From IMG/VR virus record IMGVR_UViG_3300036766_000194, positions 124,001 through 188,000 of that record: a stretch of 64,000 nt of DNA, one strand, 5' to 3'. The number at the start of each line of letters is the position of its first letter. Positions within the stretch are counted from its first letter, which is position 1. Below the pieces are notes generated by a model that was not told where the DNA came from, did no database searches, and saw nothing but the letters and a program-made list of their open reading frames with translations. The position numbers were made by a program, and so were the translations under genes. Of the stretch, positions 1,598 to 54,422 are shown piece after piece.

Positions 1598-1686
1598 GGA
1601 GCGGACGCCCTGTTGGAATGGGCACCTGTCTGTAAAACAGGAGTCCCCTGCGGATATTGTGGGTTCGAATCCCTCTCGCTCCACCA
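1598..1686 (+). tRNA. tRNA-Tyr(GTA)
   Basis: cloverleaf, CCTGT-CT GTA AA-ACAGG, long variable arm, CCA end. Confidence 0.92.
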
Positions 1687-1698
1687 AGTTTTATCTTT

Positions 1699-1784
1699 GC
1701 GCGAGTGGTGGAATGGCAGACACGCTGTCCTCAGAAGGCAGTCCTCGAAAGAGGGTGGAGGTTCAAATCCTCTCTTGCGCACCA
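1699..1784 (+). tRNA. tRNA-Leu(CAG)
   Basis: cloverleaf, long variable arm, A73, CCA. Confidence 0.93.
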
Positions 1785-1786
1785 AT

Positions 1787-1873
1787 GCCGAAGTGGCGGA
1801 ACTAGGCAGACGCGGCTGGCTCAAACCCAGTTGGTTAACAGCCATGGGGGTTCAAATCCCTCCTTCGGTACCA
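1787..1873 (+). tRNA. tRNA-Leu(CAA)
   Basis: cloverleaf, long variable arm, CCA. Confidence 0.93.
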
Positions 1874-1942
1874 AGTTTTTGGAGTTTACTGTGGTTTAGT
1901 TTAGAAAGGAGTAAACTAGGATAAACTCAGTAACTAGTTTGT

Positions 1943-2029
1943 GCGGGTATGGCGGAACTGGCAGACGCGTTGGACTTAAAATCCAATGGCCGCAAGGCCG
2001 TGGGGGATCGTGGCCCTCTACCCGTACCA
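1943..2029 (+). tRNA. tRNA-Leu(TAA)
   Basis: cloverleaf, atypical T-loop ATCGTGG, CCA. Confidence 0.88.
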
Positions 2030-2042
2030 AAGTTTTGATTTT

Positions 2043-2126
2043 CGGCGAGTGGCGTAATGGCAGCCGCGCTAGACTTAGAATCTAGTCCTTAAATGGGTGT
2101 GGGTTCGAATCCCTCCTCGCCGACCA
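2043..2126 (+). tRNA. tRNA-Leu(TAG)
   Basis: CTAGA-CT TAG AA-TCTAG, CCA. Confidence 0.92.
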
Positions 2127-2132
2127 AAATTT

Positions 2133-2218
2133 GCACCTGTGCCGGAACTGGCATACGGGCACGGCTGAGAACCGTGGAGCGAAAGCTCTTGTGAGTTCGA
2201 CTCTCACCAGGTGCACCA
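2133..2218 (+). tRNA. tRNA-Leu(GAG)
   Basis: CACGG-CT GAG AA-CCGTG, CCA. Confidence 0.93.
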
Positions 2219-2223
2219 ATATT

Positions 2224-2275
2224 CGCTAAGGATGGCGGAACTAGGCAGACGCATCCTTTAGGAACCCCAGTAGCG
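2224..2275 (+). pseudogene. tRNA-Leu D-arm remnant or tRNA-like hairpin
   Basis: 2233-2252 is identical to the D-arm region of Leu(CAA) at 1794-1813; no anticodon loop or T-arm. Confidence 0.5.
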
Positions 2276-2337
2276 AGTCCGGTTTTGATATGTGATATTA
2301 TATAGAGGAAGGGGTTTCTATATAAGATAACCTATAT

Positions 2338-2427
2338 GGGAAGTTGGCAGAGTGGCCTATTGTGCTGGTTTGCTAAACCAGAATGCTCGAAAGGGCATCA
2401 GAGGTTCGAATCCTCTACTTCCCGCCA
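2338..2427 (+). tRNA. tRNA-Ser(GCT)
   Basis: cloverleaf, long variable arm, G73, CCA. Confidence 0.93.
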
Positions 2428-2431
2428 ATTT

Positions 2432-2521
2432 GGACGGTTGACAGAGTGGCCTATTGTGCACGCCTGGAAAGCGTGATTACCCGAAAGGGTAACGAGTGTT
2501 CGAATCACTCACCGTCCGCCA
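2432..2521 (+). tRNA. tRNA-Ser(GGA)
   Basis: cloverleaf, long variable arm, G73, CCA. Confidence 0.93.
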
Positions 2522-2525
2522 GATT

Positions 2526-2675
2526 ATGAATCTAAAATGCAAGTGTGGTGAGGACAAATGGGAAGTTGTACAGAAAGCTGATGGTAAGAAGACTCTTACC
2601 TGCTTGTCTTGTGGTGCTGAGATTTTAATTTTCTTACTACTTCATCCTGAAAATAAGGATGTGAAGTGGGAGTAA
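2526..2675 (+). CDS. small Zn-ribbon protein (49 aa) inside tRNA array 1
   Basis: MNLKCKCGEDKW...TCLSCG; fills the tRNA spacer almost exactly. Confidence 0.55.
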   Translation: MNLKCKCGEDKWEVVQKADGKKTLTCLSCGAEILIFLLLHPENKDVKWE

Positions 2676-2682
2676 AGAGTTT

Positions 2683-2769
2683 GGAAGATGTGAGCGATGG
2701 CCGCTCGCTCGTCTCGAAAACGAGTCAAGCCGAAAGGCATAGGGTGTTCGATTCACCCATCTTCCGCCA
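2683..2769 (+). tRNA. tRNA-Ser(CGA)
   Basis: CTCGT-CT CGA AA-ACGAG, long variable arm, CCA; atypical D-arm. Confidence 0.88.
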
Positions 2770-2772
2770 AAT

Positions 2773-2855
2773 GGAAAGATCTGCCGACGGCAAAGGCAAT
2801 CTGTCTTGAAAACAGACGCACCGAAAGGTGCACGGTTCGACTCCGTATCTTTCCT
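2773..2855 (+). tRNA. tRNA-Ser(TGA), no encoded CCA
   Basis: TCTGT-CT TGA AA-ACAGA, long variable arm, acceptor stem GGAAAGA/TCTTTCC. Confidence 0.82.
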
Positions 2856-2873
2856 CATTAGTGAACTTTCTAT

Positions 2874-3194
2874 ATGGGTATAAAGTTCACAGTGTACAAA
2901 ACAACGAATCTTAAGAATGCCAAATTCTACCTTGGCTCTCATAAGACCGTTAATCCGAACGATAGCTATCTGGGTTCGGGTACACTTATCCTACGGGCGA
3001 TAGCCAAGTATGGAGAAGAGAACTTCAAAAAAGAAGTTCTCTTCGTATACGATAACGCTGAGAAAGCATTTAAGAAAGAATTTGAATTGGTAGAGGCTGA
3101 GAAGCAGGATAAACTCTGCTATAATTTAAGGCAGGGCGGCAGCGGTGGATTTGGGTCTTTGGTCGAAAGGACAATTTATTCTTATCTTGCGTGA
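2874..3194 (+). mobile_element. GIY-YIG (Seg-like) homing endonuclease, truncated
   Basis: VYKTTN..N.KFYLGSH, YLGSG and YNL..GG motifs; ends right after the catalytic domain; sits in a tRNA array. Confidence 0.8.
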
Positions 3195-3233: not shown

Positions 3234-3322
3234 GCTGATGACCGTTGGTACGGGGAACCGCCTTATAAGCGGTCGCTCTAGATTAGAGCTTCTTTAGGGT
3301 TCGATTCCCTACGTCAGCACCA
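3234..3322 (+). tRNA. tRNA-Ile(TAT) with long variable arm
   Basis: acceptor GCTGATG/CGTCAGC-A-CCA, ACCGC-CT TAT AA-GCGGT, variable arm GCTCTA-gat-TAGAGC, T-loop TTCGATT. Confidence 0.85.
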
Positions 3323-3326
3323 ATTC

Positions 3327-3358
3327 AAGAGGCTACTCAGTTTCGCAGCCTCTTTTCT
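3327..3358 (+). terminator. terminator ending tRNA array 1
   Basis: AAGAGGCT...AGCCTCTT followed by a T-rich tract. Confidence 0.6.
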
Positions 3359-3398
3359 CAGCCTCTTTTCGCTTTTTCAACCTCTTATAGAGGGATAA

Positions 3399-44589: not shown

Positions 44590-45210
44590 CTAGTTTATTG
44601 GCTTAAATCCATCGGGGATCTTGTCTTTTTTAACCACTCTACTCGTAGGCTTCTCTTTATCCTTGATTTCTTTTTGTGCCGAGGCCAGGATCTCTTCTTT
44701 GGTCATCTCTACAGGAAGGGTACTAATCTCCTTCTTCCTCTGATTCTTTAGACGAACAACACGATGATTTTGAAACGTTTCCATAATCTGGCTTTCCATC
44801 TCTACAGCTAGACGTATATTTTGTTCCTTAATTAACTCCAATTTAGCAGAAGTTTTCTGTAAAATATCTAGAGTACTTACAAATTCATTTTGTTCTGCTT
44901 TTAATTGTGAGCGAAGTTCAGTTTCTTGGTTGTCTAGTTCTTGTAGCAATTTATGTCTCTTCTTATTTTCTGGATTCTCTCGTTCTTGCTTTATCTCTTC
45001 CAGACGACGCTTTATTTCTCTACCTACATAATCTTCCATCTTAGAAAAGTAATTCATAGCTAGATGAACTAATTCAGAAGACTTAGCCGAATACGCCATT
45101 TTATTGTAAGTAGAGCTAGAGTCTCTTCGTAACAATTGACGCTGTTGAGTAATCTCAATATCTGAACTAACCGGGTGTCGAAGAAATCTGAAAGAATTAT
45201 TGTTACCCAT
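44590..45210 (-). CDS. coiled-coil hypothetical protein
   Basis: E/K/Q-rich heptads. Confidence 0.55.
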   Translation of the reverse strand: MGNNNSFRFLRHPVSSDIEITQQRQLLRRDSSSTYNKMAYSAKSSELVHLAMNYFSKMEDYVGREIKRRLEEIKQERENPENKKRHKLLQELDNQETELRSQLKAEQNEFVSTLDILQKTSAKLELIKEQNIRLAVEMESQIMETFQNHRVVRLKNQRKKEISTLPVEMTKEEILASAQKEIKDKEKPTSRVVKKDKIPDGFKPIN

Positions 45211-48200
45211 GCATAGCCTCTATCAATGAAATCTTAGATTTTAAAAATTCATTGGGAATCTCGGTCACTACTGTTTTTTCCAAAGTCATAATCTTGTCTT
45301 TATAACGAACTTTTATAATGTTCGTTCCTTTCCCAAACCCTACTGCAGCTGTAAGTTTAACTACTATGTCGGGTGTGAGATCAATAAGTTCGGGCAATCC
45401 TGTATCTATTTTTGGAATAGGAAGGATGGGGGTAGAAACACTAATCTTTTTTGGTCTCCTAATAGGATTATCCAATAAAACATCTTCCACAGGAGTAACA
45501 GTTGAAGGAGGGGCAAACAATTCTCCCTGGATAATTTCTTCCTTACCAAGACGCATAATGTTCGGATACACTGCTCTGGATGGTGGTATAGGTCCTAGAT
45601 ATCCGCTAGGAGGCATTATTCCACGATCTTTGGGTGATAACCCATTTCGAGTTTCGTAATCCTCTAATGTCCCTAATTTGTCGTCATCAGGAACATTATC
45701 AATAGTCCAGAACTCGTGTAGTTGTAGAACAGCTACTAGAGAATTTACAAGACTCTTATGGTCTTTTGCGTCAAACACCTCTTTTATTGACAAGAAGGCA
45801 CGTTCGTGTAAGGATTCTTTTAACCAATTTTTAGCCTTTTCTCTCCGCTCTTCCACCCCAGACTCTATGGCTTTGATAAGAGATTTTACAGTGTCTTGAG
45901 TAAACTCCGAGGGAATATAACGTTCCATACCTTCAATAGCCGTCCACGCAGCAGGCTTATGACCATCATCACCCGTAACGTGATGCTCTACGTCCCAATT
46001 TCTACCATACTCCACATCGCACTCAATAGGCACTACCCAGTTCATTCTTTCATGAAGTTTGCGTAACTTCATAAGACGAGAAATCCTAGGTAGAACAAAG
46101 GGGACATACTCATTCTTAACCGCAAAGTCAATTTCGTCATGAACCGAACAATGAACTCTAAGAATACTTTGTACTTCAGGTTCTTGGTCGCATGCCCATA
46201 TACGAATACGGTTTAAGGAGAGGCGCATGTAGTCTCCTGCCAGTCCTTGTAGAGGAACGTTCACCGCTACGCGGCCAATTTTACCCTGAAAACGATTATA
46301 ATCCTGTACATTACGAACACCCGTATCTACGTTTCTCCACACGCGGTTATTATGTTCCTTTAGACGTTCGTATTCAGCCTTATCCTCAGGAGATTCTGAA
46401 TTCTTTAGAGCTTCTTCCTTCTTACAAGACTTCCGCCATTCCCAATAATTCTCTAATTCAATCTTTAAAGGTTCGTGTATGTGAAGAACTTCCATAGCGG
46501 ACTTAAAATTGATGATACGTCCGGTAGAAGTCTTACAAATCATCTTATCCTTGGCTATAGCCTGCTTCATGGTGCACCACTCAGCAAAAACGGGTACTCC
46601 TGCCCAGTATTTCTCAACCATTAATTTCGCTTCTTCCCAAGTGATGTCAGGATTCTGCTTCTTCATATTCTCATAGATGGTGTATTCGGTACCCCCGTAC
46701 AGAAGAGCAAAGTTAATGATCTTAGCCAGTGAACGTAGAGCTTTTTTGATAGCCTTGGGAGTGTTGGGATCATTAAATTCAGGGAATACTTTAGATGCGG
46801 TCAAGGAATGGAAATCCCCAGCCCCTTCAAGGAATTCTTTAATGAATTCAGGCTCACCACTTACATTAGCGGCAGCACGCATTTCAATATTGCTATAGTC
46901 AATGGTGAAGAACGTCCAGCCTGGTTCGGTGCTAAACAGCGCACGGATGTTGACTACTTCAGCCGCGTCTGCCCTACCATTCTTCCAAATGGTGTTAAAC
47001 TTCCTATCGCAAGTCTTACAAGAAGGAACTAAACATATGGCATAGCCCTGATAGAACCCAATATGATTCTTAATGATATTAGGTGCAACCTTACGAATTT
47101 TACGTTTTCCCGTTACGACCTTTTCTTCTCTGGAGTTGAAGATGGATCCTTCATCTGTTTCGTAGGTACGGGTGACTGTCTCAGTAATGTCTTCTTCGAT
47201 TTCTTTAAAACACGACGGGTGTAGATCGGCTTCTGCATGTTCTTCAATCTCCTCTTCTGGAATTGAATCTGGTTCTAGAACGTTGCCTTTTACCCACCAG
47301 TTGCCCTCAACACGGACAATACCTTGCGGGTTGAGACCAAAACCCCCATCAACTATAAAGTCCCCACCTGCTCCGGATAATCGTCCCCCGGCTACAGTGG
47401 TTTGTTTTAAGAAAATACGAGCAGAATTATCACGCTTATCGTAAGTTAGGTTTTCAGGATGTAATGCGACATATTCCTTATACTTTCCGTAGAGATTCAG
47501 AAATTCATTATCTGGATACAACTTTTGTAAGTCAGACAGAGCCTCAGCGTCTACACTATTCCCTCCTCCCGCTGTCTTCTTAGTTACCTTCAACCCCAGG
47601 GTGTTGAATAGTAGTTTGCCAACTTGAGCTGGAGATCCAGGATTAAAAATAGTATCTTCAATGGGATTATTATCCTCATCCTTTTCTACTTTCCATCCGT
47701 TCTTAACAGAAATATCACGAAGCTGATTTTCAATCTTTTTTATGATAGTCTCATGCCAGTTAACAGTACGATTACGCTTTTGTATGTCTATTAAGAACCG
47801 TTGACGCTCAATCCACGACAAAGAGTCTACAAGTTCTTGATCAATACGATGAACAAATTTTTGTTGAGCAGCCCGTTCCCTCAAATGTTTCCACAATAGC
47901 CATGTACAGATAGCATCCGATGCCGCATACCAGAGAGTTACCTCAAGAGGAAGCCAGGTGAAGGGAACATATTGTACACGTTGAGTATGTTTATTGATCT
48001 TACGTTCTTCAGAAGTACACTTACAATCTCCACTCTGTAACGTTGGGCACCAATCAGCTTTGATCTTAATAAGTTCATCAAGATCAATCATTTCCATACC
48101 CAAGAGTTTTTTACTTAAAGCCTTCAAACCACCTGTATCTCCGCTGTATTGCCCTCGCTTTTTATCAGCGACGTCGGCCTTGGGATCAACAATGTAATGG

Positions 48201-48802
48201 AGGACTTGAACATCTTCAAAATAAGGATAACCGCGTAGCTTCGCGCCAATACAAAGACGCATTATCTCACGGTCAAACTTAGCATTATAAAAAACCAAGT
48301 GACAAACATCAAACAGGGGTTGGAGAGCTTCCAGTACGTCCGCACGACTAACATTTTGAGAAGGATTTCCTTCTTTATCGGCATGCTCATGGGCGATAGG
48401 AATATAGACTCCTTCAATACCATTAGACGATAAACAGATACCAGCAATATCAATCATCACTTCGTAAAGGGGTTGACCGTCAACACCCATCTTGTAAAAA
48501 CTACGGGTATCAAGTCCTAGGGTTTCTGTGTCTAACGCCACCACGGGCATAAGCATTCCGTTTATGGTAAAATGCCGTGTGGTATCGGATATAACTTCTT
48601 GAACCCAATCAAGAAGAGTTTCTTTCGTATTGATGATACGGAAGGCTTTCTCTGCCATCCAAGGCTTTTTTAATTTTTGTATCTCTAGAGTTTTTAAATG
48701 AAAACGAAATACACTTCGGATGTCTTTAGGAGCCTTAATTTTAACAGGTTTTTTGACAACCAGGTCTTCTGGGTTTACATTCTCACGTTTTATCTTAGCC
48801 AT
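45203..48802 (-). CDS. family A DNA polymerase with 3'-5' exonuclease
   Basis: DTET, YNAKFD, YAASD; motif A DYSNIEMR, motif B RSLAKIINFALLYG, motif C VHDEI. Confidence 0.95.
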   Translation of the reverse strand: MAKIKRENVNPEDLVVKKPVKIKAPKDIRSVFRFHLKTLEIQKLKKPWMAEKAFRIINTKETLLDWVQEVISDTTRHFTINGMLMPVVALDTETLGLDTRSFYKMGVDGQPLYEVMIDIAGICLSSNGIEGVYIPIAHEHADKEGNPSQNVSRADVLEALQPLFDVCHLVFYNAKFDREIMRLCIGAKLRGYPYFEDVQVLHYIVDPKADVADKKRGQYSGDTGGLKALSKKLLGMEMIDLDELIKIKADWCPTLQSGDCKCTSEERKINKHTQRVQYVPFTWLPLEVTLWYAASDAICTWLLWKHLRERAAQQKFVHRIDQELVDSLSWIERQRFLIDIQKRNRTVNWHETIIKKIENQLRDISVKNGWKVEKDEDNNPIEDTIFNPGSPAQVGKLLFNTLGLKVTKKTAGGGNSVDAEALSDLQKLYPDNEFLNLYGKYKEYVALHPENLTYDKRDNSARIFLKQTTVAGGRLSGAGGDFIVDGGFGLNPQGIVRVEGNWWVKGNVLEPDSIPEEEIEEHAEADLHPSCFKEIEEDITETVTRTYETDEGSIFNSREEKVVTGKRKIRKVAPNIIKNHIGFYQGYAICLVPSCKTCDRKFNTIWKNGRADAAEVVNIRALFSTEPGWTFFTIDYSNIEMRAAANVSGEPEFIKEFLEGAGDFHSLTASKVFPEFNDPNTPKAIKKALRSLAKIINFALLYGGTEYTIYENMKKQNPDITWEEAKLMVEKYWAGVPVFAEWCTMKQAIAKDKMICKTSTGRIINFKSAMEVLHIHEPLKIELENYWEWRKSCKKEEALKNSESPEDKAEYERLKEHNNRVWRNVDTGVRNVQDYNRFQGKIGRVAVNVPLQGLAGDYMRLSLNRIRIWACDQEPEVQSILRVHCSVHDEIDFAVKNEYVPFVLPRISRLMKLRKLHERMNWVVPIECDVEYGRNWDVEHHVTGDDGHKPAAWTAIEGMERYIPSEFTQDTVKSLIKAIESGVEERREKAKNWLKESLHERAFLSIKEVFDAKDHKSLVNSLVAVLQLHEFWTIDNVPDDDKLGTLEDYETRNGLSPKDRGIMPPSGYLGPIPPSRAVYPNIMRLGKEEIIQGELFAPPSTVTPVEDVLLDNPIRRPKKISVSTPILPIPKIDTGLPELIDLTPDIVVKLTAAVGFGKGTNIIKVRYKDKIMTLEKTVVTEIPNEFLKSKISLIEAMHG

Positions 48803-51425: not shown

Positions 51426-54422
51426 TTAGCGACCCCGACGATGGAAAGGATTCCGTGTCACCGAAACTCCCGGAAGTACTACATTCTGTTGTATCTTACG
51501 CTGACGTTCAAGTAATTTAATACCCCGCATTGGTATTCCAGAGACATCCGTTATCATACCCGGTGGATGAGCTTGACGTTCTTGCATAGCAAAACTTAAT
51601 CCTGTGGGGTCCATCACCAAACGACCTTCTCCCTGGAGATACTCACTCACCTGCCAAGCCACAAGTGCTACGGCGTCACACATATCGTCATGAGAACCCT
51701 TTTCTTCAGGAGCTTTTACACGAAGCATATACTTACTAGCCACAGTTGCTTCTACTTGTTTAATTTCACTCAAGAATTTAGGGACATTCGGAAATCTTGT
51801 TCGTCCATTATCAATGTATCCTTTAAGAGAAAAGTACATTGTAGAATTTATAGCTGGAGTTAAATGCACAAGCTCCATACCTTCTATCCCGTTAATCTGT
51901 AGCAACTGAACCAACATAGTTCCACCGTGTTGGTCCGTTACTCCTTTAAAGCAGGGCATTATATTGTGCATGGCTTTAAGCCAGGAAACAATGTCTAAGA
52001 GAGGAAGTTCGGTATAGTTGACATACTTGTCCCCTCCTAAGCCTATGTCTTCTACACCTGGTCCCTCAAATTTCTCTCCTACCATCATCCTATCCACATA
52101 GTCATACACTAATTCTATGCCAACATTGTTTCTAAATTCAAGATGACCTATGGCAAGAGCAGTACCATCATGTAGCATACCCAAGTCCAGTCCCCAGAAA
52201 TACTGACGTCCTAGCATTTGGATAGGATCAAACTGAATGGTATTCATACGCTCTTCATCTACGCATACATTAAGTTGTGCACTCTTAACATAAGTTTCAG
52301 AAGAATCTAGGAACTCTCCTCCATATTCCGCCCGCCAAGTGATAGAAGATGTAGCATATTTCTGATGAAGAAATGGAGAGTCAGCATCGGGCCACATTTC
52401 AGCTGTAGAGCAACGTAGTGTAAAGATGCCCGATGAAATTCCTCTCTCCAAAGCGAGCTTGTGTAGCTCATACATCTTACCTACACGTTGCCAGGGAGAA
52501 GAGATAGACAAGATAAGAGACTCTCTACGTCCCTTACCAGCATCGGCCTTAAAACGGGCCGTAGCCGGGGTTGCCGACTCATATATTTCGTCAGAACTTG
52601 AACCCTTAGCCGCTCGAAAATGAGCAAATTCATCCAAAGCCAAGAATAGTGAAGAAGGTCCGCGAAGTGCGTTAGTCGTACAGGGATAGGAAGCTACTCT
52701 AATTGTAGGAGTAATATCACGTTTCTGGCGGTCTGCTTCGCTTACAAAAGCCATTTCGCTATTTGAATTGACTCGGATGTAGGGAGAAAAGAATGGTGAA
52801 TGATTTACACGTTCACGGAGTTTATCATAGAGACGGTTGCTACCTTCATCGTCTTGAGCCATGAATGTGAAGTCAATAGGTGAACCCGGCATTAAACCAT
52901 AATGTTCTTGAGGAGAACGAATATTGAGTAGACGATAGAGAGCATATCCTCCAATGGCCGATACCAATTCCGAATTGTGGGTGACGTTGAAGTTCTTCCC
53001 AAACAAAAACAGACCGTCAGGAGTGTCTACCGCGATACAGCGGACTAGCGTCTCGCCAGCGTACTCCACCTCTGTAATCGTACGATAATTCTGCAAATCA
53101 CGCACTTTTTTTGGCACACTCGCCAATTTTCGTTTAAGACGAAAAACAGGTAAAGTAGCCGTCCATAAAACAGAGTAGTAGGCACCACAGTCTTTACCAT
53201 ATAAAGTAGCTCGGCCCTCTTTCCAGTAGGGTTTTAACCCAAGCGAAGCGGCTAGGTGGTACGCGCCCTCAGACAAGTTACGATTGGTGTTAGCAAATTC
53301 ACACTGCCCGTCTTCTGCACAGTATCCATCTGTATCCATCAACCCCTGTAGCAAGGCTAACCGCTGTTCAGTGGAAGCATATAGGTAGTCCTCAGGAATG
53401 TGCTTGTTTTTCCAAAGTTTCATTTTTCGCAACGGGAGGCCGAATATGCTCCAGGAAAAGTTCTTAGCGTGCTTTCCCTGCTTCCATTTGAAACCTGCTG
53501 CGGTGAAATGCTTTAGAATTTCTGGGGCATCATCGGGGTGGCTGTAGATGTAGCCATCACACTTGCTACCATCCCCTAGCCACACCCCCAAGCAATAAGG
53601 ATCCAGGGGTAACTGCTTTTCTTCAAACTCAACGGGAGCGGTGATTCGGATGGTGTGATTGCGATCTTTGCCATGCATCAATGTAGATTTAATTTCTTCC
53701 GTGGTCCTAACCGTCCCTGTAATACCGGAACGGTCTATGAAATTCGCCCGGCCCCGCTTCGCTCCCTTTCCACGTTGAGTTTTAGTGATAGGCATGCGGA
53801 GATTACGACGATCTAACATTGTAAAGGTCTTCCAAAGATGTTCAGGATGTGCTAAGGTGTAAGTTCCATCGTCAAAACTAACCCTATAAACCTTTGACCA
53901 AAACGGAGCAAAGGCTTCCTTTACCTTGATAGCTTTACCATTAGGAGAAAGTATTGTGTCACCCATTTCTAAATCACCCATCCGTTTGAAGCCAGAGGGC
54001 GTAGGGACTACTTCTTCAACACTGAGAGCTTTTCCACCACGGCGGCCTGCAAATAACGCCGCCTCATTAAACCCATATTCGGGGATATCCTGCCAATCGG
54101 CTATGTTACAACGACCCTCTTCGTAAAAGTAGTTTAATAACTGTGCTTCATCGTCAAATTCATATAGAATTTGATCACGAAACTTGTTCCAAACCACTGC
54201 TTTTGGGTGCCCAGGCATTTCCGGGCGATAGTCAAAAGGTATGCCAAAGAAACAGCGAATACATAAACGCTGTAAAGGTGACATTACAAGATTAAATCCC
54301 TGGGGAGACTCCACAAAGTCTAGGGCATTTAATATGCTAACTGTCTCGCCAATAGATTGATCGACAAGTTTACCTAATAGAGAAGCCTGAGATTTATGGC
54401 TAAATTTTTGGCTTTGTGACAT
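51426..54422 (-). CDS. terL: terminase large subunit containing an intein
   Basis: Walker A GRRGGK/S, Walker B ALDEFAH, nuclease GLDLG...D and HDDMCDA. Confidence 0.93.
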   Translation of the reverse strand: MSQSQKFSHKSQASLLGKLVDQSIGETVSILNALDFVESPQGFNLVMSPLQRLCIRCFFGIPFDYRPEMPGHPKAVVWNKFRDQILYEFDDEAQLLNYFYEEGRCNIADWQDIPEYGFNEAALFAGRRGGKALSVEEVVPTPSGFKRMGDLEMGDTILSPNGKAIKVKEAFAPFWSKVYRVSFDDGTYTLAHPEHLWKTFTMLDRRNLRMPITKTQRGKGAKRGRANFIDRSGITGTVRTTEEIKSTLMHGKDRNHTIRITAPVEFEEKQLPLDPYCLGVWLGDGSKCDGYIYSHPDDAPEILKHFTAAGFKWKQGKHAKNFSWSIFGLPLRKMKLWKNKHIPEDYLYASTEQRLALLQGLMDTDGYCAEDGQCEFANTNRNLSEGAYHLAASLGLKPYWKEGRATLYGKDCGAYYSVLWTATLPVFRLKRKLASVPKKVRDLQNYRTITEVEYAGETLVRCIAVDTPDGLFLFGKNFNVTHNSELVSAIGGYALYRLLNIRSPQEHYGLMPGSPIDFTFMAQDDEGSNRLYDKLRERVNHSPFFSPYIRVNSNSEMAFVSEADRQKRDITPTIRVASYPCTTNALRGPSSLFLALDEFAHFRAAKGSSSDEIYESATPATARFKADAGKGRRESLILSISSPWQRVGKMYELHKLALERGISSGIFTLRCSTAEMWPDADSPFLHQKYATSSITWRAEYGGEFLDSSETYVKSAQLNVCVDEERMNTIQFDPIQMLGRQYFWGLDLGMLHDGTALAIGHLEFRNNVGIELVYDYVDRMMVGEKFEGPGVEDIGLGGDKYVNYTELPLLDIVSWLKAMHNIMPCFKGVTDQHGGTMLVQLLQINGIEGMELVHLTPAINSTMYFSLKGYIDNGRTRFPNVPKFLSEIKQVEATVASKYMLRVKAPEEKGSHDDMCDAVALVAWQVSEYLQGEGRLVMDPTGLSFAMQERQAHPPGMITDVSGIPMRGIKLLERQRKIQQNVVLPGVSVTRNPFHRRGR
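52974..54029 (-). mobile_element. class-3 intein (352 aa) with LAGLIDADG endonuclease
   Basis: starts ALS, block B HPEHLW, LGVWLGDG and LQGLMDTDG, block F VRCIAV, ends VTHN/S. Confidence 0.92.

Follow-up and report, generated by a model that had tools for sequence, protein, structure and literature searches.

A phage-encoded tRNA(UAU) with an extra arm carrying a GAU loop

Most bacteria read the isoleucine codon AUA with a tRNA whose CAU anticodon has been converted by TilS, so that a gene for a tRNA with a plain UAU anticodon and a long variable arm raises the question of whether it is a genuine tRNA and, if so, how it could be charged and used. We examined such a gene, hereafter termed X, in a 64,000-nucleotide window (positions 124,001 to 188,000 of the IMG/VR record IMGVR_UViG_3300036766_000194) that lies in a complete 300-kb jumbo phage from sediment. 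ARAGORN called a tRNA-Ile(tat) of 89 nt at exactly 3234-3322 on the plus strand of the window. In contrast, the generic tRNA model of Rfam (RF00005) gave only 29.4 bits, marginally above its gathering score of 29, and did so in a permissive run but not with default filters. The observation made in the original prediction, namely a tRNA gene with anticodon UAU, A73, a long variable arm and A at position 8, is thus confirmed, although two points of its description have to be corrected.

The 5' strand of the acceptor stem (3234-3240, GCUGAUG) pairs with 3312-3318 (CGUCAGC) over 7 bp including one U.G pair, and is followed by A73 at 3319 and an encoded CCA at 3320-3322. The anticodon arm (3257-3273) consists of a 5-bp stem, ACCGC/GCGGU, closed by the loop CUUAUAA, with U33, the anticodon UAU at 3264-3266, A37 and A38; the identical 17-mer occurs in other tRNA(UAU) genes. 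The T arm (3295-3311) is UAGGG-UUCGAUU-CCCUA. The D arm had been described as poorly formed, but it is in fact a compact arm (3241-3256) made of A8, a 4-bp stem CCGU/ACGG with the tetraloop UGGU, and the 3-nt linker GGA. This layout recurs with covarying stems (GACU/AGUC, GUGU/ACAC, GCAC/GUGC) in related genes, occurring with a 16-nt D region in 47 of the 112 aligned family members described below. A8 is not unique to X either, since the tRNA-Tyr and tRNA-Ile(GAU) of the phage also possess it. The second correction concerns the 21-nt variable region. The minimum-free-energy form of its arm is indeed a 6-bp stem, GCUCUA/UAGAGC, with a GAU triloop, and folds better than shuffled sequence (z = -3.5). 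However, when compared with its relatives, the arm (3275-3289) is best read as a 4-bp stem, GCUC/GAGC, with a 7-nt loop UAGAUUA in which GAU occupies 3281-3283, followed by the 5-nt linker UUCUU (3290-3294).

X sits at the end of an array of the class II tRNAs of the phage (1598-2856, plus strand), comprising one Tyr, five Leu and four Ser genes. Between the Ser tRNAs and X is inserted the remnant of a GIY-YIG (SegE-like) homing endonuclease ORF (2874-3194, plus strand), which matches only positions 58-99 of the 123 positions of the Pfam profile PF19835 (E = 6e-5). Downstream of X, a hairpin AAGAGGCU...AGCCUCUU followed by a U-rich tract (3327-3360, plus strand; z = -2.5) could be a terminator of the tRNA cluster, but this is inference only, as a consensus terminator scan did not flag it because its loop exceeds 8 nt. 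No RNA run was found to contain the locus, and the DNA contigs covering it show only that X is unchanged in an independent strain variant whose neighbouring sequence has indels, including a 2-nt deletion at 3027 in the endonuclease remnant. An identical copy of X was also found in another metagenome contig.

We then asked whether X is an isolated oddity. A blastn search of the phage database with the whole tRNA block found only generic tRNA similarities. A search for relatives through the two neighbouring proteins was hardly more informative, as the 694-aa protein led to five distant loci without tRNAs and the 226-aa protein to none. On the other hand, a scan of viral sequences for a UAU anticodon loop, the motif GATNA and a T loop returned at least 120 loci; ARAGORN called 113 of the 123 matches tRNA(tat), 85 of them unique. 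A second scan that did not require GAT, likewise not exhaustive, brought 29 tRNA(tat) genes among loci that the first scan had not found, and 27 of these still have GAU in the arm. Altogether, we found 112 distinct tRNA(UAU) genes of this design, 111 of them outside the window. They lie in viral contigs, in the two cultured cyanophages S-SRM01 and S-SKS1, where they are unannotated, and in three metagenome-assembled genomes of Acidobacteriota. A blastn search of cultured phages with three other subfamily representatives found nothing. In the phage tRNA arrays that were retrieved, long tRNAs other than Leu, Ser and Tyr are almost all UAU (142, against 1-3 for any other anticodon).

The family so defined combines a canonical 7/5 acceptor/T branch, A73 (110 of 112 members), the anticodon loop CUUAUAA and an extra hairpin between the anticodon and T arms, with a 3-5 bp covarying stem, a 7-nt loop of consensus YAGAUNR and a 5-6 nt linker to the T stem; in the subfamily of X, the compact D arm (N8, 4 bp, a UGGU-type tetraloop, 3-nt purine linker) is added. 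X displays each of these features. The G, A and U of the loop are present in 110, 110 and 108 of the 112 members, respectively, with the reservation that 83 of the aligned sequences were collected with a pattern that required GATNA. All four pairs of the arm stem show compensatory changes and 94.4% of cells are paired; the covariation score is 0.735 against 0.184 in shuffles, a value reached by 0 of 500 shuffles, although IMG/VR is redundant and cell counts are therefore not counts of independent events. A covariance model built without X scored X at 78.7 bits over its full length, 1-92 (E = 2e-18), whereas the next tRNA in the genome scored 41.2 bits. Two complete relatives of the phage, whose DNA polymerases are 51-54% identical, keep an X-like gene (69.6 and 60.7 bits) at the same place, directly after the four Ser tRNAs and Leu(taa), and with the same arm stem GCUC/GAGC(U). 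ARAGORN missed these two orthologues.

Is there a need for such a tRNA in this phage? AUA occurs 1488 times in the genome, that is 16.9 per 1000 codons and 28% of Ile codons, and searches of the phage for TilS, class Ia and class IIa aminoacyl-tRNA synthetase genes found none. To determine what AUA means, we examined 19 ATA sites of the phage DNA polymerase PolA in 119 homologues. These sites show I 0.31, V 0.18 and L 0.15, to be compared with 0.46, 0.19 and 0.13 at Ile sites and 0.09, 0.05 and 0.60 at Leu sites, with log-likelihoods of -45.0 for Ile, -53.7 for Leu and -69.3 for Ser. The same holds at codon level in 10 relatives, although this test rests on a single protein. Stop-codon recoding, which the tta and tca tRNAs of the phage could suggest, was rejected because ORFs of 100 aa or more already cover 86% of the genome under the standard code. 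However, the phage also has a tRNA(CAU) that resembles E. coli ileX by eye and is likely a tRNA-Ile2(CAU), so that X would be a second AUA decoder and is not strictly required. Moreover, the three bacterial genomes that carry family members all have TilS, which rules out that TilS loss explains the gene there, and the polymerase genes of the relatives hardly use ATA (1%) yet these phages keep the tRNA. Supplying AUA decoding may therefore not be the whole story.

We propose with fair confidence that X is a functional, phage-encoded tRNA-Ile that decodes AUA with an unconverted UAU anticodon and needs no TilS, and that it belongs to a widespread, mostly unannotated family of tRNA(UAU) genes carried mainly by phages. 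The interpretation given in the original prediction is thus partly supported: a real, conserved gene and a role in reading AUA without TilS hold, whereas its additional argument from a single ATA codon opening the control run of a "leader 1" is not needed; the only leader-like Rfam match nearby (Phe_leader, 26.2 bits against a gathering score of 55) is at chance level. It missed the large family, the conserved compact type of the D arm, the likely tRNA-Ile2(CAU), and the fact that the informative feature of the long arm is its GAU loop rather than its length. What our analysis establishes is the existence of the gene, its membership of the family, purifying selection on the arm and its GAU loop, the heavy use of AUA by the phage and the Ile-type nature of its AUA sites; processing, charging and use by the ribosome are inferred from sequence alone, as is any role of the GAU loop in recognition by IleRS.

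With regard to the E. coli isoleucine identity set (Nureki 1994, as summarised in PMC9976931), X has A73, A35, U36, A37 and A38 but U34 instead of G34 or lysidine-34. Typical bacterial IleRS charges a UAU anticodon poorly, and E. coli IleRS is 360-fold worse with UAU than with the lysidine form (PMC3575796). The minor elements of the set are C29-G41, U12-A23, C4-G69 and D-loop G16/D20/D21; in X, C29-G41 and a U-A pair at the inner end of the D stem are present, the 4-69 pair is G-C, and the D-loop elements are absent, the numbering being ambiguous in a compact D arm. A GAU triplet is nevertheless present, but in the extra arm. An attractive though tentative hypothesis would thus be that this loop, which resembles the tRNA-Ile(GAU) anticodon loop CUGAUAA, acts as a portable isoleucine identity element allowing the IleRS of many different hosts to charge the phage tRNA, while the true UAU loop does the decoding. 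Such a "two-headed" tRNA would carry decoding and charging specificity on separate hairpins, making it independent of TilS and portable across hosts. This idea is geometrically awkward, because in a normal L-shape a variable arm does not sit where the anticodon does, and the loop is not a perfect copy of an anticodon loop, with A at the position of U33 in 99 of 112 members and U at the position of A37 in 71 of 112.

One could also assume that the arm is functional without being an IleRS determinant, a possibility that we consider about as open as the mimic itself. It may recruit or block an enzyme modifying U34 or A37, protect against a host defence targeting tRNAs, restrict misreading of AUG, which unmodified UAU does on E. 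coli ribosomes (PMC3575796), or act as a brace replacing missing contacts between the D loop and the variable loop. The deviations just mentioned and the co-occurrence of the arm with a reduced D arm in many members are in favor of this view. However, the arm is just as conserved in members with a fully normal D arm, so it is not merely a brace; no complementary partner for AGAU was seen by eye in the constant parts of the tRNA, nor any conserved complementarity of the arm loop with the anticodon, T or D loops; and the identity of the triplet with the major Ile anticodon would otherwise be a coincidence. It is much less likely that X is charged with another amino acid through its class II shape, LeuRS being the main candidate as the original prediction had suggested, and SerRS or TyrRS the alternatives, and mistranslates AUA as a weapon against the host or as tolerated ambiguity. 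A73 and a long arm are shared with tRNA-Leu and tRNA-Tyr, X lies in the block of class II tRNAs, and its D loop, its A8-C9 and its multi-nucleotide 3' linker resemble the tRNA-Tyr of the phage; precedents are the nematode nev-tRNA-Ile(UAU), charged with Leu (PMC3333845, PMC4300185), and allo-tRNAs inserting Ser at Leu codons. Nonetheless, mischarging would damage the phage's own proteins at about 1500 sites, and its AUA sites are neither Leu-like nor Ser-like. U8:A14 and a normal D loop carrying G18G19, which E. coli LeuRS uses according to the identity literature, are lacking, the D loop having only 4 nt. G73, listed in identity reviews as the SerRS determinant, is absent in 110 of 112 members, and U35, the main TyrRS anticodon determinant, is absent. 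Charging by LeuRS is therefore disfavoured, though not biochemically excluded, and this explanation does not account for the GAU in the loop.

It also appears unlikely that X is a tRNA-like RNA serving not in decoding but as a decoy or regulator, sequestering a host factor or an anticodon nuclease, or marking a mobile element. Supporting this idea, Mukai et al. found six allo-tRNA(UAU) species inactive in E. coli reporter tests and linked them to toxin-antitoxin loci and transposons, family members occur as accessory genes in bacteria that have TilS, the relatives keep the gene in spite of their rare use of ATA, and the non-canonical core (A8, tetraloop D arm) could impair use by the ribosome. 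But every part needed for translation is conserved, including the 7/5 branch, GG in the D loop, a canonical T loop, a canonical 7-nt anticodon loop with U33 and A37, and A73, with CCA encoded in about two thirds of members; the genes sit inside arrays of ordinary tRNA genes, and the anticodon is also fixed as UAU in orthologues found by the structure model rather than by a pattern. Finally, a chance or degenerate sequence whose hairpin and U-tract would simply be a terminator could be suspected from the marginal generic score, from the decayed endonuclease gene that precedes X and from a terminator scan that flags 3275-3289 plus UUCUUU. This is already contradicted by the score against the family model, the orthologues at the same position and the covarying stems, and in other members the tail after the hairpin is not U-rich (for example CUUGA or CGAGC).

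A parallel can be drawn with the TilS-independent tRNA-Ile2(UAU) of Mycoplasma mobile and of lactic acid bacteria (PMC3575796; Tomikawa 2018 and Uesugi 2022 as cited in PMC9976931), which share with X the UAU anticodon, A37/A38 and A73 and read AUA as Ile without lysidine. Those are, however, ordinary class I tRNAs with a short variable loop and a normal D arm, and they work because the organism's own IleRS is adapted (Arg865 in M. mobile), as is the ribosome in M. mobile, whereas X is phage-borne and must use whatever IleRS the host has. The allo-tRNAs (Mukai et al. 2017, PMC5389517), among which UAU is the commonest anticodon, also have a long variable arm and a tRNA-Sec-like D arm with a tetraloop, occur in Acidobacteria and soil or sediment metagenomes, and are in some cases phage-linked. 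But they have an 8/4 or 9/3 acceptor/T branch and G73 or U73, giving a presumed Ser identity. Such a fold is rejected by the sequence of X, in which an eighth acceptor pair would be A.A and the T stem has 5 pairs, and two allo-like UAU genes that we came across have other arm loops (GUGACA and UUUUGUG). The nev-tRNA-Ile(UAU) of nematodes likewise combines a class II shape with a UAU anticodon, but is eukaryotic, derived from tRNA-Leu and charged with Leu in vitro, and X lacks tRNA-Leu core features. [quoted passage not shown] The 3' linker of the arm is 5-6 nt, against 1-2 nt in the Leu and Ser tRNAs of this phage (about 1 nt in its Ser tRNAs, three of which have G73, Ser(tga) being the exception), and the arm loop sequence is conserved, which is not the case of the arm sequence in Leu and Ser tRNAs. 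As to the concept, hairpins that copy a cognate anticodon loop and are read by a synthetase include the E. coli thrS mRNA operator; such mimics sit in mRNAs and regulate translation, whereas the putative mimic considered here would sit inside a tRNA, next to a different, decoding anticodon. Searches of the literature, restricted to an open-access library, found no description of a long-arm tRNA(UAU) with a GAU loop in phages.

As these genes are missed by annotation, phage tRNA repertoires and codon-adaptation analyses are undercounting AUA decoders. More generally, AUA is the one sense codon that nearly all bacteria read only after an essential enzyme, TilS, converts C34 to lysidine, and the known escapes required co-evolution of IleRS, and in M. 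mobile of the ribosome too. A widespread phage tRNA that reads AUA with plain UAU and carries its own conserved GAU hairpin points to a different solution, encoded entirely in the tRNA. If the hairpin is the IleRS handle, it would be a natural case of tRNA identity moved off the anticodon onto an accessory arm and a ready-made design for sense-codon reassignment and orthogonal tRNAs, and it would help explain how phages with AT-richer codon use overcome a host's shortage of tRNA-Ile2.

We first examined what is encoded at window 3234-3322 on the + strand. ARAGORN calls there a tRNA-Ile(tat) of 89 nt, hereafter X. As read from the sequence, X displays a 7-bp acceptor stem (GCUGAUG/CGUCAGC) with one U.G pair, A8, a short D region of 16 nt, a 5-bp anticodon stem (ACCGC/GCGGU), a canonical 7-nt anticodon loop CUUAUAA (U33, anticodon UAU, A37 and A38), a 21-nt variable region, a canonical T arm (UAGGG-UUCGAUU-CCCUA), A73 and an encoded CCA. 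The strand folds better than shuffled sequence (-35 kcal/mol, z = -3.5). However, the generic Rfam tRNA model gives X only 29.4 bits against a gathering score of 29, and its default filters miss the gene. The observation made in the original prediction, a tRNA with a UAU anticodon and a long variable arm, is therefore correct.

The window corresponds to bases 124001-188000 of a complete virus record with direct terminal repeats, which is 299,875 bp long, has 43% G+C and comes from sediment metagenomes. The phage encodes 46 tRNAs covering all 20 amino acids (counting the two suppressor-like species with anticodons tta and tca), plus a permuted tmRNA at genome 234274-234654 on the minus strand, whose tag peptide ends in FAMAAAA. 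The two suppressor-like tRNAs lie at genome 9571-9641 and 239973-240046, with anticodons UUA (reads UAA) and UCA (reads UGA). The phage nevertheless uses the standard code, under which the genome reads well and ORFs of 100 aa or more cover 86% of it. We found no TilS, no class Ia aaRS and no class IIa aaRS in the phage. It also carries a tRNA-Ile(GAU), at genome 9480-9554, and three tRNA(CAU), one of which, at genome 118072-118147, closely resembles E. coli ileX by visual inspection and would need host TilS to read AUA. The tRNA-Ile(GAU) and the tRNA-Tyr (window 1598-1686) of the phage have, like X, an A at position 8 in place of the near-universal U8.

X lies at the end of a block that holds all the class II tRNAs of the phage, namely Tyr, five Leu and four Ser, at window 1598-2856. 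Within this block, tRNA-Ser(cga) (2683-2769) and tRNA-Ser(tga) (2773-2856) fit the Rfam tRNA-Sec model better than the tRNA model (46.4 and 34.2 bits). By eye, both have an 8-bp acceptor stem and a 4-bp T stem, which is the (8/4) tRNA-Ser type that Mukai et al. reported from phages, and Ser(tga) seems to have U73 and no encoded CCA. X is separated from the block by a decayed, truncated SegE-like GIY-YIG homing-endonuclease ORF (2874-3194). This remnant contains a promoter-like site at 3097-3125 (+) (CTGAGA, 17 nt, TG-TATAAT), about 110 nt upstream of X, although it is only a consensus match. A hairpin with a U-tract follows X.

We next checked whether or not X has counterparts elsewhere. Its exact anticodon arm recurs in a 93-nt tRNA(UAU) of an unrelated 433-kb viral contig, which also has a long variable region, as well as in three Acidobacteriota MAG tRNAs of 92-94 nt. 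Comparison of these genes revealed a common design for the variable arm, consisting of a short G+C-rich stem and a 7-nt loop: CCGG/CCGG with CUGAUUA in the 433-kb contig, GCGC/GCGC with CAGAUWA in the three MAGs, and GCUC/GAGC with UAGAUUA in X. We scanned IMG/VR with the pattern CTTATAA, 11-17 nt, GATNA, 9-16 nt and GGTTCRANTCC, which returned at least 120 rows where we roughly expected only a few chance matches. Of the 123 matches analyzed, ARAGORN called 113 tRNA(tat), 85 of them unique and 88-96 nt long. As this pattern requires GAT, a second scan was performed without this constraint (CTTATAA, 20-36 nt, the T loop, 10 nt, then ACCA), and it gave at least 118 rows. Of these, 61 were loci already found by the first scan, and the 57 new loci included 29 ARAGORN tRNA(tat), of which 27 still carry GAU in the arm, nearly always as YAGAU in the hairpin loop, the two clear exceptions being the loci L257 and L223. 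The same comparison revealed, in eleven viral contigs, a UAU-loop plus T-loop element with a fixed 12-nt variable region, AATGCGAAGGTC, which ARAGORN does not call a tRNA. In the phage tRNA arrays retrieved, long tRNAs other than Leu, Ser and Tyr are almost exclusively UAU (142, against 1-3 for any other anticodon). In addition, tRNA-model matches of 108-123 nt in two other giant viral contigs (403101-403208 and 405230-405338 in contig G001:C1, 74281-74403 in contig G002:C1) suggest tRNAs with large insertions.

The arm was then analyzed in an alignment of 112 distinct sequences including X. Position 1 of the loop is C in 78 and U in 33 sequences, position 2 is A in 99, position 3 is G in 110, position 4 is A in 110, position 5 is U in 108, position 6 is U in 71, A in 24, G in 10 and C in 7, and position 7 is A in 90 and G in 16. 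A73 is present in 110 of the 112 sequences. All four pairs of the arm stem show compensatory changes and 94.4% of cells are paired. For the whole structure, the covariation score is 0.735, against 0.184 in shuffles (reached by 0 of 500) and at most 0.231 when the partners are slid. The low figure obtained for the acceptor helix in this analysis is due to an alignment offset between the two D-arm types and is not a biological feature. Indeed, two body types share the same arm. About half of the sequences have a normal D arm, for example UAGCUCAAUGGUAGAGC, whereas the rest have a compact D region like that of X, with N8 (A, G or U), a 4-bp stem that covaries (GACU/AGUC, GUGU/ACAC, CCGU/ACGG, GCAC/GUGC), a UGGU-type tetraloop and a 3-nt purine linker. 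Of the 112 sequences, 47 have the exact 16-nt D-region length of X. The linker from the arm to the T stem is 5-6 nt throughout, unlike in the Leu and Ser tRNAs of this phage, which have 1-2 nt, and this is the length of an ordinary variable loop following an anticodon arm.

To evaluate the membership of X, a covariance model was built from 38 compact-type members without X. This model scores X at 78.7 bits (E 2e-18), whereas the next-best tRNA in the window and in the whole genome scores 41.2 bits, and there is only one copy. The family A DNA polymerase of the phage, encoded at window 45203-48802 (-), has over 200 relatives, many of which lie on contigs of 300-460 kb, so that the phage belongs to a large jumbo-phage clade. 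Near this gene, at window 51426-54422 (-), lies a 998-aa protein with a LAGLIDADG domain, possibly an intein or homing endonuclease. In the two complete IMG/VR relatives (456 and 463 kb, polymerase 51-54% identical), the covariance model finds one X-like gene each, at 69.6 and 60.7 bits. These genes lie directly after Ser x4 and Leu(taa), without the GIY-YIG insertion, which both relatives lack. They have A8, a compact D arm, a UAU anticodon, the arm GCUC-CUGAUUA-GAGC(U), A73 and CCA, but were not called by ARAGORN. Furthermore, an independent sediment sample holds a strain variant in which 15 nt are deleted inside tRNA-Ser(cga) (window 2697-2720) and 2 nt in the GIY-YIG remnant (window 3027), while X is unchanged. 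Among cultured phages, Synechococcus phages S-SRM01 (100.9 bits, though an identical sequence was in the training set of the model) and S-SKS1 (90.6 bits) carry members, and in both records the gene lies in an intergenic gap with no annotation.

We also analyzed what AUA means in this phage. ATA is used 1488 times, that is 16.9 per 1000 codons and 28% of Ile codons, but its use is very uneven between genes: for example, one 802-aa gene has 3 ATA against 31 ATT/ATC, while one 833-aa gene has 30 against 27. The polymerase has 19 alignable ATA sites, at which 119 homologues show I, V and L at frequencies of 0.31, 0.18 and 0.15, respectively. The corresponding values are 0.46, 0.19 and 0.13 at ATT/ATC sites and 0.09, 0.05 and 0.60 at Leu sites, while Ser sites show S at 0.36. 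The log-likelihoods of the ATA sites are -45.0 under the Ile profile, -49.2 under Val, -53.7 under Leu and -69.3 under Ser. A codon-level test was also performed in 10 relatives, and it avoids circularity because these relatives almost never use ATA themselves, their polymerase genes having ATA at about 1% of aligned Ile-type sites. At the ATA sites of the phage, the relatives use ATT/ATC in 26%, Val codons in 16% and Leu codons in 19% of cases, compared with 38%, 22% and 18% at its ATT/ATC sites and 9%, 6% and 54% at its Leu sites. Although this rests on one protein and 19 sites, the phage therefore "expects" Ile at AUA, and a Leu- or Ser-charged X would hurt the phage itself.

Altogether, these data demonstrate a conserved tRNA gene with every element needed for translation, a fixed UAU anticodon and A73, and an accessory hairpin under purifying selection whose loop keeps GAU. 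Charging and decoding by X, as well as any role of the hairpin in recognition by IleRS, are inferred. It is established that E. coli IleRS charges tRNA-Ile2 with UAU 360-fold less well than with lysidine-AU, that Mycoplasma mobile needed an IleRS change (Arg865) to use UAU, and that unmodified UAU also reads AUG on E. coli ribosomes (PMC3575796). The strong IleRS determinants are the anticodon-loop bases and A73 (PMC9976931). In this view, a phage tRNA with UAU would meet an IleRS that recognizes it poorly, whatever the host. The invariant GAU, in a 7-nt loop closed mostly by C-G, resembles the anticodon loop of tRNA-Ile(GAU), CUGAUAA, and we propose that it could supply the missing recognition. 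Since a 5-6 nt linker follows the arm, as a variable loop follows an anticodon arm, and since the reduced D arm may loosen the core, the arm might take the place of the anticodon arm on the enzyme.

On the other hand, several points count against this hypothesis, which remains tentative and which we consider less likely than not. A normal variable arm points away from the anticodon, and the loop has A rather than U at "33" and mostly U rather than A at "37". One could also assume that the arm controls U34 modification, ensures fidelity against AUG or allows escape from a tRNA-targeting defence, as these roles fit the same conservation. By contrast, we are fairly confident that X is a working AUA-reading tRNA-Ile. 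The TilS-independent decoding of AUA put forward in the original prediction is the best-supported reading, but it was reached for incomplete reasons and is only partly supported as it was argued, and the alternative of charging by LeuRS is disfavoured.

A parallel can be drawn with the TilS-independent tRNA-Ile(UAU) of M. mobile and of lactic acid bacteria, like which X would work, although it is not built like them because it is class II-like. X shares with allo-tRNA(UAU) the anticodon, the long arm and the tetraloop D arm, but it fails their defining 8/4 or 9/3 branch and their G73/U73 discriminator (PMC5389517). It also shares shape and anticodon with the nematode nev-tRNA-Ile(UAU), which are tRNA-Leu derivatives charged with Leu. 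Our literature searches found no description of this phage family or of a GAU-loop arm, although they covered a single open-access collection and do not prove novelty. The reading of AUA by a UAU anticodon without TilS is thus already known, and what differs here is a phage-borne tRNA that carries a long arm with a conserved GAU loop. The finding is larger than the single gene originally reported: X belongs to a widespread, under-annotated family of phage tRNA(UAU) genes with an anticodon-like GAU arm.
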